NCBI GenBank assembly: GCA_037447605.1
Contig: CM074810.1
Span: forward strand, 186,001-250,000
Direction of reading: 5' to 3'
From: Zygnema circumcarinatum SAG 698-1b
Lineage: Eukaryota; Plantae; Zygnematophyceae
Length of the DNA: 64,000 bases
Below are positions 844 through 63,835 of this stretch, in pieces (position 1 is the first letter of the stretch; the number at the start of each line of letters is the position of its first letter). Below the pieces are notes generated by a model. It did no database searches, had not been told where the DNA came from, and was given only the letters and a program-made list of their open reading frames with translations. A program made the position numbers and the translations under genes.

Positions 844-3234
844 ATGGGAGACGAGAAGGGCGATGAGACGACCAGTAGCGGCGGGACATGTGACGGAGTG
901 ACCAGTCCGCACGCGCCAGGTGGCGACACGAAGGGCAGTGCCGGATCCGGGGGGAAGGCAGCCAATCAGAGGTCGCCAACGTGGAAGGAGAGAGAGAACA
1001 ACAAGAAGAGAGAGCGGAGACGCCGCGCAATTGCGGCCAAGATCTTTTCGGGGCTGCGGGCGCATGGAAACTATAAGTTGCCGAAGGTGGGTCTGTATGA
1101 GGTGTGAGGGGAGAGTGAGCTGGGTAGGAGTGAAGTGATAAGGGTGGTGTAGATGAGGTAGGAATGGGGTGGAAGTGGGTAGTTGGGGTAGAAGTTGTGT
1201 ATAGATTGGGGCTCGAAATAGGTTAGCCTTGTGGTCGGAATGGGATAGTGATGGTAGAAGTCGAAGGAGCAGTAGAAGGAGAAGTAGAAGGAGAAGTAGA
1301 TGGAGTAGTAGAAGGAGAAGTAGAAGTAGAAGTAGAAGTAGAAGTAGAAGTAGAAGTAGAAGTAGAAGTAGAAGAAGAAGTAGAAGTGGAAGTAGAAGTA
1401 GAAGTAGGTTAAACATGGGGTGTTTATTGTGATACATTGGAAAACAAGAAATACGGTGGCAGAGATGAAGATGGACGGTGGAGATGTGGTAGATTGAGGT
1501 AGAGTTGCATGCAAATGGGGTTCAGGTGAAACGTTGATTGTGGGTGGTGCAATTAGAAGAGTGAAAGGGAGGGAAGTAATGATATGATTGCTGTCGGTCT
1601 CACACGTTTTCCCTTATGTTTCGGTGTTCCTTTTTCCCTCTTCGTGGCAGCACTGTGACAATAACGAGGTTTTGAAGGCACTCTGCGCGGAAGCAGGCTG
1701 GATGGTGGAAGAGGACGGGACCACCTACAAGGTAAGGCAGCCTCTCCCCCTCTCTCTCTCTCTCTCTCTCTCTCACGCGGGCCCCCCCTCCCTCTCTCTC
1801 TCACTCTCGCACCCCTCTCTCTCTCCCTGTAGGTGTGTGTGTCTGTACGTTTCTTCTTTGATTCGTTCTTTTAAAGAGTAAGGCCCTTTACCTCCTCCTT
1901 CACACGTTCCTCACACTCCCTCCTCTCTCCCTCCTTCGCTCTTGCCCTCTCTCTCCAGTGCCCCTCTCCCCCCAAACGCGCGCTCTCAGACGCTCCCAAG
2001 GAGACACGTGTCCCCCCCCCCGCGCTCACAGCTCTGCAGCTGCTCCCATGGCTGCAGGGCCTCACAGGAGGGCAGAGCTCCTCTCTCCTCCCTACTCTCT
2101 ATGGGGCAGGAGGAGGGGGAGAGGGGCTTGCGGTTTCAGGAAATGTTGGAGGGGGGGTAGGAGAGGGAGGAGGGAGAGGAGCGGGAGGGTTAAGGAGCGG
2201 GACCCTCCAGCTCGGAGGGGAGGCGAAGGTGAAAACGGAGTGGAATCAGCCAAATGGCATTCCTGCAGGTGGGTCACTCTCATCTCCCTGACTTACCGTT
2301 GACCTGTTTCCTCTCTCTCCTCTGTCTCCCCATCTATCCTTCCCTACCCGTCCCTCGCCTTCACTTCCCACCGCATCGCCTTCTTCATATTGTTCTCCCC
2401 CCTATCTGTCTCCCTCGCTTCTCCTTGTCTCTCTCCCCCTATTTCCCCTATCTCGCTCTCTCTCTTGCGCTCTCCCACAACCCCGTTCTTCCCTTCTCTC
2501 GCTACCTGTCCTCTCCCCCTCTCCAATCATCCCCTCCACCCTTCCTCCATTTCAATCGCCCACTCCCCGCCCGCCACCCTCACTCCCATTGTCACCTACC
2601 TATCGCTTCCTCCTCTCGCCCCTTTTCCTCCCTTCTCTCACTTCCCCCACCCCCACCCCCTCCCCCTCCCCCTCCCCCTCCACCTCCCTCTACCCTNNNN
2701 NNNNNNTCCCCTCCCTCTCCCACTCCCCCCTCCTCCCTCCCCCTCCGCCCTTCCCCCCTCCCTTCTTCACCCTCCTTAGGCCTTCCCCCACGTGCAGGCT
2801 CCTCCAATCCGAGCGCGCCAGGTGGCAGCAGTCCCCGGGAGTCGTGGCGAAGCGACAGCTCTACCGCCAACGCCCCCACGTCAGCAGAGGTCCTCAGCGC
2901 CCTCCTGCCACGTGTCAGTGGGGGAGCTGACGTGGCCGCCTTCTACCGAACCAGCAGACTCTTAGAGGCCTTGAACCGGCAGGCGGGGGGGGGAGACATT
3001 AGAATGGCGGGAGGGCAGAGGGAGGGAAAGAGCATGGCGGGAGTGGGAGTGGGAGAGGAGAGAGGAGGGAGGGAGAGCAGAGAAGGGAGAGCTGCTAGGG
3101 AGGAGATCAATATAGCGGCGCCTCTTTTGAGGGAAGCGGTGCCTCTATCGGGAGGCTCTTCTTTCGAGGCCGGCCCGGGCCTTCGGGCAGTTCCAAAAGT
3201 CAATTTGGCTTGGGCCAAGCTCAGTTTGAAATAA
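844..3234 (+). CDS. BES1/BZR1: BES1/BZR1-family transcription factor, exons 844-1086, 1651-1731, 1959-2268, 2780-3234 (~362 aa)
   Basis: BES1_N signature [39 protein letters not shown]|[27 protein letters not shown] and an LLPWL motif in exon 3. All junctions are GT-AG and phase-consistent (1089 nt). A 10-N gap lies in intron 3. Confidence 0.9.
1271..1407 (+). repeat. (AGTAGA)n hexamer microsatellite in BES1 intron 1
   Basis: Directly visible tandem AGTAGA/AGGAGA units. Confidence 0.9.
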
Positions 3235-61000: not shown

Positions 61001-63835
61001 GGAGAGTGAAAGAGAGGGGGAGAGAGAGGTAGAGAGGGAGACTTACATCGTCAGGCACAGGTGGCGAGGTTGGCGAAAGGGCAAGTTCCATGGCTTCCCA
61101 CAGTTTCCGTAAAAAGTCCGTCACGGCTGACAGTTCTATGCCCTCCATGTTGAAGCTGTTCGCATCATCATCATCATCATCATCATCATCATCATCATCA
61201 TCATCATCATCATCATGCCCGAAAAACAGATTAAATAAATAAACTGAATAGAAATAAAAAAAACTAAACTGAATAAACTAAATAATAATAAACTAAATAG
61301 AGAAATAAACTGACGGTGTAACTATTTCCAAAACGGTCCCATGAAGCAATCAAAGAGTGCGGCTCAACATCTTATTAAAGGGCAGCTTTTGAGGTTTGAT
61401 TTTTTTTGAAGTTTCAAAATTCAAGATAGCTATTTTTTTATTTTCAAACGTTTGACGATGGGGATTATGAGATTGAAAGGGTTCAGGATCTTCGCAGGCG
61501 GCTGTAAATATCTCGATATATTCGTCCATACGGAACCGACATGACGCCGTACGGTACGGTCCTAAAACGACAAGACTACTTCGTCGCACGGCGTGCGACC
61601 GCGTCGCAAACGTCGCACAGTCGTATCGGAGATATATCGGACCTTCAAGTGACATCTCGATATATCGCGATATCAAGGTTTAAGAGTTGAGGGTTTATCT
61701 CACTTGGGGAAAATCTCTGAGGCCAAGGTCAGGAGCAGCAGCGAGAGCGTTTCCGAGCGCCACGTGTCCCCCCTCTGTACGGATCATAGCGCCGGGCAGA
61801 AAAATAACTACAATTAAAAAGCTTCTGGAATAATTTTGTCCTCAAACTGGAGTTTCAAGCCTGCCCTCAACCAGTTTTTAACGAAAAACTGACTAAAAAC
61901 TGAAAACCCTAAAATACAAGGGCAGATTTTTTTCAGCTTCCAACTCACAATGAGACCCTCATAGTGTTCGATCGCCTTCTTCCCCGCCACGTGGACCACT
62001 CTGGATCTGACACATGGCACCACCCTGGCCACCACCGCTAGCGCCCGAAGCGCCACGTCACCCTCGTCCTTTGCCACGTCGTCGGCACTGACAGCTGTCA
62101 GCAGCTGAGACACTGCCACGTCAGCAATTGCAGCCTCTCCCACGGCGCCACCTGTCATCTCCTCGGCCTCTCCTTCTCCCTCCCTCTTCTTGGCGTTTTC
62201 CTCTCCCCCCTTTCCCCCTATTGTACCCGAATGTTCCATATTGATATTTTCCAATGCCACGGACAAACCCCCTTTTTTAAATCCCCCTTTTTCTGTATTG
62301 GCAATTTCTGCCAAGGCTCCAAAAATTTGTTCGATTAACGGGGGCCGGCGGGGGAAGCGGAGAAGGAGATGAACAAAAATTCGGGCTATTTCCAACCGTT
62401 GATTTGGGGAGAGATCGACGGCGCCAGGTGGCAGGCTGCCAATGGCCTGAAGTCCCGCCACTGGTCCCAAAAAAAAAGAATCCGAAAACCCGGTAAATTT
62501 TTTTGGTTAGGGCCATTTATAAGAAGGCCTAAAACCCGCCAAAACTCTGAACCCTTCATTTTAAGCTCCCGTTCCCCTGAACCCTGTCAAACCCTATCGA
62601 TCCTAAACTCTAAACCCTAAACGTAAACCCTATCAACCCTAAACCCTAAACCCTAAACATTTAACCCTGTCAACCCTAAACCCTATCAACCCTGATCCCT
62701 ATCGACACTAAACCCTAAAAACTAAACCCTTAACTCTTAACCCTATCAACCCTATCAACCTTAAACCCTAAACCCTATCAGCCCTAAACCCTATCGACCC
62801 TAAACCCTTAACCCTTAACCCTATCAGCTCTATCAACCCTATATCCTTAGCCCTATCAACACTATCAACACTATCAACCCTAAACCCTTAACCCTATCAA
62901 CCCTAAACCCCTAACCCTATCAACCCTAAACCCTTAACCCTATCAACCCTAAACCCCTAACCCTATCAACCCTAAACCCCTAACCCTATCAACCCTAAAC
63001 CCATCAATATCCCCCTAAACACAAAATTTTCCAACCCCTAAAAAGCAGCCACTCACCTCCAGTTTCAAGCAGCTCCCCTCCCTCTCCCTCTCCCTCTCCC
63101 TCTCCTTCAGAAATCGCTCCACAGAAAGTTTCAAGAAGATCTCCTTCCAGCCTATCCAAGGGCGCCACGTCAGTGCCACTTGCTTTTAACTCGAAATCAG
63201 TACCCCCGTCCTCCTCCCGCAAACTCTCCACCGCCGCCTTAGCGATTTCCGCCGCCACTCTCAGCGCTAATACCCCATTTGTACCCCTTTTTTCTTCCAT
63301 ATTTTTTTTCGTATTTTCCGAGTTCCAAACCCCAATTAAATTCGGCAAAATTTTTCTCGCTACCATTCTGCTCGAATTCACGGACCCTCTCCCCACTGAA
63401 CCCAAAACCCTAACTACCGAAAACCCTAATTTTTTCAGCCTATTCACATTTTCTCCTTTGGGCTTTTCACTTTCCGGAATTTTGGATTTTATTGCGGTGA
63501 AAAAATCTTCGACCAATTCGTCGTCGAGTACGAAATCGACAAATGTGACTTTAGGACGAGCCCCCTCCTTCCCCCCTCCTTCCTGGAAGCTTCCCTTTAC
63601 CCCCTTTAAACCCAGCTTTATTTCCCACTCTTTGGGAGATATGAGATTCGAAATCGATCTCTCACAAGCAGAGAGAGCGAGGCCCGCCTCTCCCAAAATC
63701 TGAGAATTAGGGTTTTCAGAATCCGGAATCGGTACAAGCACATCTTTTAGGGTTTCCCATACAGCGGAAATGTGGGAGGGGAGCATGGATGGCATTTTTT
63801 TCGCAGTTTTTTTAAGGAGAGAAAGGGACTCAAGC
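58030..63835 (-). CDS. MMS19: MMS19/MET18 cytosolic Fe-S assembly targeting factor; 3' part only, 5' exons beyond position 64000
   Basis: HEAT-like exons at ~63835-63057, 62462-~61955, ~61155-61045, ~60660-59822, ~59460-59380, ~59150-59020, ~58810-58720, ~58436-58355 and ~58156-58077. The C-terminus is SVREASLQLL..LPHALVYPHRGQ|VVPAVTAALDDPKRIVRREAAQCRRAW. The final stop is uncertain. Confidence 0.85.
59596..59763 (+). repeat. Interstitial (CCCTAA)n telomere-type array, ~28 units, in an MMS19 intron
   Basis: Near-perfect TTAGGG hexamers on the minus strand, with a few CTCTAA/CACTAA/CAGTAA variants. Confidence 0.95.
62585..63005 (+). repeat. Degenerate telomere-derived satellite (CCCTAAA / CCCTTAA / CCCTATCAA; ~23-bp higher-order unit toward the right end) in an MMS19 intron
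   Basis: AACCCTATCAACCCTAAACCCCT repeats several times at 62890-63002. Confidence 0.85.

Follow-up and report, generated by a model that had tools for sequence, protein, structure and literature searches.

The 64,000-nucleotide stretch analysed here (contig CM074810.1 of Zygnema circumcarinatum SAG 698-1b, positions 186,001 to 250,000; hereafter the window) carries a family of short palindromic elements centred on the 10-mer GCCACGTGGC, written more widely as G[AC]CANNTG[GT]C. The family is enriched as a signal at the level of DNA, above Markov as well as codon-preserving backgrounds, and is densest inside the coding exons of an MMS19 gene. With slightly better than even confidence, the motif is interpreted as the binding site of a dimeric G-box factor, often paired with the CCAAT-binding complex NF-Y, which is overlaid on coding DNA and whose copies are kept by selection. 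The further-reaching proposal, that the site family has been written into the coding sequence of housekeeping genes in a fixed codon phase, with half of the compatible MMS19 tripeptides forming full sites and some residues replaced, is offered more tentatively, at somewhat less than even confidence.

An earlier reading made from the letters and open reading frames (ORFs) of the window (hereafter the sequence-only reading) had listed nine perfect copies of GCCACGTGGC. All nine were recovered, three of them in MMS19 exons:

11297-11306: within the 14-bp palindrome CTGCCACGTGGCAG (11295-11308), about 580 bp past the last recognised NOL9 exon
37545-37554, plus strand: inside the 14-bp palindrome ATGCCACGTGGCAT; part of a CCAAT-N8-GCCACGTGGC composite (37532-37554) that is followed by a telo-box-like ACCCTAA, in a non-coding, promoter-like setting
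50198-50207: flanked by a CT-rich simple repeat and a telo-box array, probably outside coding sequence
50841-50850: inside an ORF without a Pfam match
57082-57091: ends 3 nt before the ATG of the minus-strand PHB gene, in the 5' leader or core promoter
59096-59105, minus strand: MMS19 exon, frame 2, encoding LPRG, within the 14-bp palindrome CTGCCACGTGGCAG; a second site at 59073 (GCCACGTGTT, sense strand) lies 23 bp off
59468-59477: within TTGCCACGTGGCAA, either intronic in MMS19 or bordering a small exon with weak support
60021-60030, minus strand: large MMS19 exon, frame 0, encoding ATWQ in a variable loop
60482-60491, minus strand: large MMS19 exon, frame 1, encoding SHVA in a variable segment

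No copy appeared in any of 100 dinucleotide shuffles of the window. Before the Markov expectations were computed, simple repeats totalling 18.3 kb, namely (AGGGAG)n, (TCTT)n and arrays resembling telomeres, were masked; the remaining 45.6 kb should hold 0.02 copies at order 1, 0.07 at order 3 and 2.4 at order 5, the last value coming from a model built on the same sequence, in which the hexamers of GCCACGTGGC itself are already included. Relative to order 3, the nine copies correspond to a roughly 130-fold over-representation, at a density of about one perfect copy per 7 kb. CCACGTGG occurs 11 times and is flanked by G and C in nine of these. The extension of some copies to palindromes of 12-14 bp, also pointed out before, is real: four are perfect over 14 bp (11295-11308, 37543-37556, 59094-59107 and 59466-59479), and the base outside GCCAC is T (T/A next out) in 12 of the 18 half-sites of the perfect copies.

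The 30-nt flanks of the nine copies bear no relation to each other. Thus, each is a short element in its own right and not a copy of a mobile element or repeat, which rules out a transposon or repeat-copy origin. Duplication is present in the window, as two tandem pairs flank 10-N assembly gaps (2715-4657 and 4668-6605, 97.5% identical over 1955 bp, gap 4658-4667; 25209-26472 and 26503-27764, 99.8% identical over 1264 bp, gap 26493-26502), and the motif relatives at 4771, 4861, 4881 and 26791 are therefore duplicates of those at 2817, 2907, 2927 and 25497. The 99.8% pair, which splits the C-terminal (DUSP-like) exons of RIT1, has the appearance of either an assembly artefact or a duplication that happened very recently. 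The four doubled relatives were excluded from the counts of CCAAT gaps, palindromes and neighbour spacing, and 4861 and 4881 also from the dispersion test. As a source of the motif, assembly duplication was rejected; it touches these four relatives only, and the perfect copies are all unduplicated and at least 3.4 kb away from any gap. An apparent second family of palindromes, ATGGCCAT and CATGGCCATG, could likewise be taken to favour a repeat-based explanation; its enrichment is due to a local (GCCATG)n microsatellite (22892-22945), which is translated as an (AM)n run in RIT1, within the first exon. With motif counts that beat every shuffle and Markov control, the probability that chance, base composition, simple repeats, transposon copies or assembly duplication lies behind the motif is considered close to negligible.

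The strongest evidence comes from MMS19, on the minus strand from 58076 to beyond 63.8 kb. Its exons were placed by a profile from seven homologues, giving seven exons of 2478 nt in total; these calls rest on homology, and exons were searched and scored singly, with codons pooled only for the shuffle counts. The following features are relevant here:

63837-63097, 62464-61988, 60663-59839, 59179-59012, 58804-58718, 58437-58342 and 58159-58076, minus strand: homology-supported MMS19 exons
61986-62156, minus strand: cluster of motif sites at 62147, 62115, 62090, 62073, 62052, 62009 and 61986, with an eighth upstream at 62423, all in one MMS19 exon, neighbours 17-43 bp apart

The MMS19 protein of this alga is very divergent, with some 40 residues of low complexity inserted in the part encoded by exon 62464-61988. 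When the large exon was compared with 1.84 billion representative proteins, only distant MMS19 relatives were retrieved, the best with 38% identity over part of one exon; a separate homologous-protein search with the same exon gave no match, and no contigs encoding P0002 were found.

The MMS19 exons hold 13 members of the G[AC]CANNTG[GT]C family and five further GCCACGT-type sites. GCCACGT half-sites number 11, compared to 1.86 expected when synonymous codons are shuffled within the gene and 0.30 when codon order is shuffled, and none of 5000 shuffles reached 11. The family members with a non-CG core number 10, compared to 0.41 and 0.14, respectively, a count that none of 4000-5000 shuffles attained. 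Eight of the 11 ACGT tetramers in these exons have a GCC flank. Expressed as density, 5.2 family sites per kb are found in the MMS19 exons, about 1.3 in the rest of the gene and about 0.44 in the rest of the unmasked window. The excess over Markov and codon-shuffled backgrounds, the absence of which would have spoken against the sequence-only reading, is hence located inside coding exons and not in promoters alone. Moreover, the peptides which that reading had ascribed to the motif in MMS19 (ATWQ at 60021, SHVA at 60482, LPRG at 59096 and DVA four times) are supported by homology.

Perfect copies in the MMS19 exons use all three frames (ATWQ, SHVA, LPRG), and the family as a whole is strongly biased towards one of them. 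Frame 2 (xxG-[AC]CA-NNT-G[GT]C) accounts for 11 of the 13 members, compared to about 37% by chance. In this phase motif bases 1, 4, 7 and 10 fall on wobble positions, and the protein is constrained only to [P/T] and [G/V]. The preference is attributed to the lowest cost for the protein, as two residues are constrained here and three or four in the other frames. The base preceding the frame-2 10-mer is T in nine of 11 cases, as it is in the perfect copies. Among the 22 [PT]x[GV] tripeptides encoded by the MMS19 exons, 11 show G, A, T and C at the four wobble positions, for which the naive probability is 0.004 each. The distribution of matches is bimodal, with eight tripeptides showing zero or one match, three showing two or three, and 11 showing four. 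A ranking of wobble 4-mers made independently of the motif definition of the sequence-only reading places GATC first of 256 (13 compared to 3.0 expected). As a control, none of the 16 eligible tripeptides in the motif-free 998-aa ORF at 43384-46377 carries the motif.

The greater density in exons than in the rest of MMS19 and the strong preference for a single frame would also be compatible with a signal read in RNA or during translation, i.e. an exonic splicing enhancer, a site for an RNA-binding protein, mRNA structure or codon context. Codon usage is already controlled for by the synonymous shuffling. The family is dyad-symmetric, with the same set of half-sites on both sides, which points to recognition of double-stranded DNA, and perfect copies also occur in promoter contexts that do not look transcribed and contain CCAAT partners. 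Because of this dyad symmetry and the promoter-type copies, a role at the level of RNA is judged highly improbable.

The motif load of MMS19 is not shared by the relatives compared. The family is missing from L002 (GC 41%), an MMS19 orthologue locus of another plant whose exons are arranged similarly; neither its 2457 nt of exon nor the 12.9 kb as a whole contain a member. The closest relative found (L001; GC 61%, 2 kb) has none either. The load is thus specific to the lineage and resides at the level of DNA. An explanation of the motif peptides at the protein level, through HEAT repeats, was rejected on the basis of these motif-free loci and the shortfall of the synonymous shuffles. At all MMS19 sites but one, the residues encoded by the motif align to match columns of the profile, the exception lying in a lineage-specific low-complexity insert; this rules out the insertion of a mini-element as their origin. 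The residues encoded by the motif are identical to the seven homologues in 19% of cases, compared to 27% elsewhere. For instance, VPAV stands in place of the VLKA or VDSI of relatives, and LPRG in place of their LSRE. From this comparison the motif residues appear to have arisen by substitution, and several were apparently replaced to make sites.

The composition of the sites follows rules that are typical of protein-DNA recognition. Relatives of GCCACGTGGC are frequent, as the sequence-only reading had also noticed: considering all unmasked ACGT tetramers, the preceding trinucleotide is GCC in 40 cases (3.9 expected), GAC in 17 (3.2 expected) and CTG in 14 (4.2 expected). These half-sites combine as GCC/GCC (nine), GCC/CTG (five, i.e. 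GCCACGTCAG), GCC/GAC (four) and GAC/GAC (three), where the nine GCC/GCC pairs exceed threefold the three expected under independent assortment. The hybrids GCCACGTCAG, GCCACGTGTC and TGACGTGGC are all frequent in the window. ACGTGGC and ACGTGTC together make up the consensus ACGTG[G/T]C of the abscisic acid-responsive element (ABRE), and TGACGTGGC is the classical G/C-box hybrid of plants. Within the G[AC]CANNTG[GT]C family, members whose core is not CG reach 36 strand-counts compared to about five expected, with GCCAGGTGGC (five), GCCACCTGTC (four) and GACAGCTGGC (three) among them. Single-mismatch variants are tolerated at half-site positions 2 and 5 only and never in the CA..TG core. Palindromes of eight bases outside the motif show no excess (186 compared to 151 expected), and a general palindrome-generating process was ruled out on this account. 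Finally, 11 of 22 close neighbour pairs are separated by 17-27 bp from centre to centre, with a favoured distance of about 21-23 bp, or approximately two helical turns.

A second element accompanies the motif at a fixed distance. CCAAT-N9-CCACG occurs four times, compared to 0.09 expected per spacing, and is absent at N8 and N10. When measured to the edge of the 10-mer, only a gap of 8 is enriched (CCAAT-N8-10mer being the same arrangement as CCAAT-N9-CCACG). CCAAT is found at this gap for seven ACGT-core sites and for three of the 17 non-CG family sites (2817, 25056 and 58142), where about 0.03 would be expected for the latter. Sharing of the gap implies that the CAGGTG and CAGCTG variants have the same composite architecture as the G-box copies. 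Apart from the promoter-like composite at 37532-37554, the composites placed in genes are as follows:

13583-13605, plus strand: GCCACGTGCC-N8-ATTGG in the NOL9 ORF, directly before the P-loop
25056-25164, plus strand: three sites in the RIT1 open reading frame, namely GACAGGTGGC-N8-ATTGG (25056-25078, encoding ATGG in frame 2), GCCACGTCGG (25089) and CTGACGTGGC-N8-ATTGG (25142-25164, encoding ADVA)
54450-54503: dyad of two facing CCAAT-N9-CCACGTG elements (a "double ERSE") located in an intron of PHB, some 60 nt before the acceptor
58129-58151, plus strand: CCAAT-N8-GACAGCTGGC lying wholly within the conserved last MMS19 exon, the sense strand of which encodes VPAVTAALD

The dyad in the PHB intron could point to a promoter within the gene or to an enhancer in the intron. 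The arrangement CCAAT-N9-CCACG is known as the endoplasmic reticulum (ER) stress response element ERSE-I, a composite bound by NF-Y together with a bZIP factor of the ATF6/bZIP28 type. The exact spacing and orientation are reproduced here, in the four CCAAT-N9-CCACG elements and the seven ACGT-core sites at this gap, with no enrichment of other gaps. Conversely, the copies in the window are located in open reading frames of RIT1 and NOL9, in the last MMS19 exon, in the PHB intron and at one promoter-like site, and none of the composites in the window was found upstream of an ER-stress or chaperone gene. A further difference is that CCAAT also pairs with cores other than ACGT.

Two additional exonic sites complete the picture for the neighbouring genes:

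54330-54339, minus strand: TGACGTGGC hybrid at the 3' end of a PHB exon, encoding DDVA, conserved from human to alga
12010-12019, minus strand: GCCAGGTGGC in the NOL9-like exon ORF, frame 2, encoding LPPG

The PHB site agrees with the sequence-only reading, as DDVA at 54330 matches prohibitin-2 in the PDB; since this peptide is conserved to human prohibitin-2, some sites merely use existing residues. For RIT1, the ADVA peptide assigned by that reading does lie in the open reading frame at 25142, albeit C-terminal to the Pfam match. The LPRG peptide ascribed to NOL9 has to be corrected to LPPG, encoded by GCCAGGTGGC at 12010.

The sequence-only reading had described the motif as saturating the window, which overstates its spread. 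Among the 31 GCCACGT-type sites, 21 are located in the last 16 kb (48-64 kb) and one in 26-48 kb, and the variance between bins was never reached by random placement. The ratio of observed to expected CpG is 0.46-0.63 in the stretch that is empty of sites and about 0.9 where they are dense.

This distribution is relevant for an origin through mutation, which the sequence-only reading had proposed, next to the marking of chromatin or DNA modification, in place of ordinary cis-regulation. The closest known iterated palindrome is GCGATCGC, the highly iterated palindrome HIP1 of cyanobacteria (PMC5861425, PMC4390886). For HIP1, over-representation of 15- to 300-fold is reported, with more than one motif per gene in some cyanobacteria (PMC5861425). 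An analogous process in Zygnema would consist of sequence-directed mutation or a bias in mismatch repair or gene conversion that pushes DNA towards the palindrome whatever its function, possibly tied to a DNA methyltransferase, with purifying selection removing only harmful copies. The likeness is considerable, as a short GC-rich palindrome is over-represented by two orders of magnitude (about 130-fold or more, within the range for HIP1) both inside and outside coding DNA and in more than one frame, indeed in all three. The alteration of residues at weakly conserved positions and the lineage-specific load fit such a drive as well, and the deamination products GCCATGTGGC were not seen in the window, although just 0.19 would be expected. 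The differences lie in the eukaryotic host, a several-fold lower density (about one perfect copy per 7 kb compared to the per-gene figure of PMC5861425), clustering, degenerate half-site hybrids and a partner at fixed distance; even spread and independence of a partner are not observed in the window. A uniform drive should populate introns and intergenic DNA no less densely than exons, whereas the MMS19 introns are less dense than the exons, a single site is found in 26-48 kb and none in the 3-kb ORF. The fixed CCAAT spacing and the hybrids between half-sites are characteristic of protein complexes, and the all-or-none wobble matching leaves no graded intermediates. In view of this binding-site grammar, the CCAAT spacing, the neighbour distance of about two turns, the clustering and the normal counts of other palindromes, a mutational or repair bias is disfavoured as the origin of the motif and regarded as improbable.

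Recognition of double-stranded DNA by a symmetric dimer, often beside a CCAAT-binding complex, is suggested by the combination of dyad symmetry, half-site hybrids, ABRE-type degeneracy, exact CCAAT distance, 17-27 bp spacing, clustering and all-or-none wobble matching. In plants, the G-box and ABRE (CACGTG; ACGTG[G/T]C) are bound by bZIP factors (GBF, ABF and HY5 groups) and bHLH factors, and GCCACGTGGC itself is the classical perfect G-box. The window reproduces the core with its GCC..GGC flanks, the G/T degeneracy of the ABRE and bZIP-type combinatorics of G-, C- and A-box half-sites, including the G/C-box hybrid TGACGTGGC. Some copies occupy gene starts, such as the site 3 nt before the PHB ATG (57082) and the promoter-like 37545, but between 58 and 63 kb the MMS19 gene body, exons included, accounts for most of the sites. 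The density is far greater than for the plant elements, many copies sit in coding exons with coordinated codon choice, and the family extends to CAGGTG and CAGCTG cores with the same flanks.

From these properties, a mechanism may be proposed. The optimum T-GCCACGTGGC-A would be a plant G-box/ABRE-type site in double-stranded DNA for a symmetric dimeric factor, most likely bZIP and possibly bHLH, often teamed with an NF-Y-type complex on CCAAT at a fixed distance. Such sites would be used at very high density in unmethylated, gene-rich DNA, including leaders, introns, promoters and coding exons. Exonic sites would be fitted where the protein can afford them, usually in the frame xxG-[AC]CA-NNT-G[GT]C, and full sites would then be retained by selection. 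The analysis establishes the enrichment, the position in exons, the coordination of codons, the grammar of the sites and the lack of the motif in an orthologue; binding by a protein, the identity of the factor and maintenance by selection, rather than by a directed mutational process, are inferred. The bound protein could serve gene regulation or the marking of chromatin.

Four points weigh against this interpretation. The strongest statistics stem from one gene in one 64-kb window. The exon excess inside MMS19 (13 family sites compared to three in a similar length of unmasked non-exon DNA) is not predicted by simple regulatory selection. Thirdly, CAGGTG and CAGCTG cores are not bZIP sites and GCCACGTCA is not a bHLH site, so that a single known factor class fails to cover the whole family; taken separately, CAGGTG/CAGCTG agree with bHLH and the GCCACGTCA hybrids with bZIP. 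Lastly, the wide family G[AC]CANNTG[GT]C was first defined on the same window, which entails some post hoc inflation of its statistics, albeit the unbiased ranking of wobble 4-mers counters this as a decisive objection.

The marking of chromatin can also be considered as the primary role. The bound factor would then be architectural or epigenetic, recruiting or excluding chromatin machinery across gene bodies, e.g. through cohesin and PRC1-type H2A ubiquitination, through Polycomb in conjunction with telo-box and GA/CTCC motifs, or through protection from DNA methylation. The sites are spread over a 6-kb gene body instead of one promoter, they track a high ratio of observed to expected CpG and are absent from CpG-depleted DNA, and the window is very rich in telo-boxes and GA/CTCC repeats. 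Two reports from Arabidopsis serve as leads. The Polycomb response elements comprise six motif classes, four of which are the G-box, telo-box, GA repeat and CTCC (PMC6063087), and the cohesin subunit SYN4 is reported to bind the G-box and direct H2Aub1 (PMC9984397). Still, the loaded genes MMS19, RIT1, NOL9 and PHB are housekeeping genes and not typical Polycomb targets, and CCAAT at the ERSE spacing is a classical activator layout. A chromatin role of this kind is thought unlikely, although it deserves more weight than a mutational drive.

For the exonic copies, the G-box interpretation touches on the concept of "duons". In this proposal, attributed to Stergachis in 2013, exonic transcription-factor sites are said to constrain codon choice. 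Exonic factor sites have also been described in plants (PMC13534478, PMC6790085). The exonic sites of the window can be classified as candidate factor sites of this type, as judged from sequence: one stretch of DNA encodes amino acids together with a factor motif, in coding sequence supported by homology (MMS19 and PHB), and synonymous positions lean to the motif beyond codon usage (MMS19). They differ from duons in that one motif family fills about half of the eligible tripeptides of a single gene, in a fixed phase, and appears to have replaced residues.

The remaining content of the window was mapped for context. The genes recognised are:

0.5-2 kb, plus strand: BES1
about 9 kb, minus strand: PMR5/TBL-like gene
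11.9-15 kb, minus strand: NOL9
22.7-26 kb, plus strand: RIT1
about 33 kb: methyltransferase gene
43.4-46.4 kb (43384-46377), minus strand: 998-aa ORF
from 57077 to below 53.9 kb, minus strand: PHB

A BES1 exon region of 385 bp is doubled (1-382 and 1437-1821, 98.4% identity). Many ORFs in 47-58 kb gave no match in Pfam, and a scan of the window against Rfam gave none. The 998-aa ORF on the minus strand is uninterrupted, has an observed to expected CpG ratio of 0.46-0.57 and lacks any G-box-family site; no Pfam match, identical gene on record or encoding contig was found for it, and it may be a lineage-specific or element-derived gene.

Repeats are prominent as well. Telo-box-like arrays occur at 50290-50410 (units of about 21 nt, AAAACCCTAAAA[CT]GTCC), 53387-53627, 59596-59763 and 62589-63002; one MMS19 intron holds 28 copies of AACCCT (TTAGGG type) and another a CCTAAAC (TTTAGGG-type) array. 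The 70 occurrences of AAACCCTA in the window fall for the most part into the gene-rich regions that also hold the G-box sites. Strand-pure purine/pyrimidine repeats extend over 17935-21974 and 28147-30106, with approximate lengths of 2.2 kb for (CCCTCT)n, 1.6 kb for (TCTT)n (higher-order unit 113 nt) and 1.9 kb for (AGAGGG)n (unit 71 nt); GC skew falls to -0.44 and rises to +0.65 in these repeats, which have potential for triplex/H-DNA. A 32-nt tandem repeat (TGCGGACCGTTAGGGCCGTTGGATGGCGCACT, 6.7 copies, 10184-10397) with several TGACG/CACGTG-like cores lies between the PMR5-like gene and NOL9.

In summary, the motif and the ERSE-I composite are known elements, and the novelty lies in how far and how regularly the motif is overlaid on coding DNA. 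A literature search found no report of enrichment of GCCACGTGGC or the G-box in Zygnematophyceae or Zygnema, nor of exonic motif saturation to this degree. If the interpretation is correct, the window contains an exon-embedded regulatory or chromatin code at a density unreported for any eukaryote, and would offer a natural system for testing selection on duons. Ever since the duon proposal, selection on exonic factor sites and their influence on codon choice and protein evolution have been in dispute; the fixed phase, the all-or-none wobble matching and the motif-free orthologue would make this question testable here, in an alga closely related to land plants. What looks like a "eukaryotic HIP1" is more likely an over-used G-box/NF-Y module, which bears on the evolution of the plant G-box/ABRE vocabulary before land plants.

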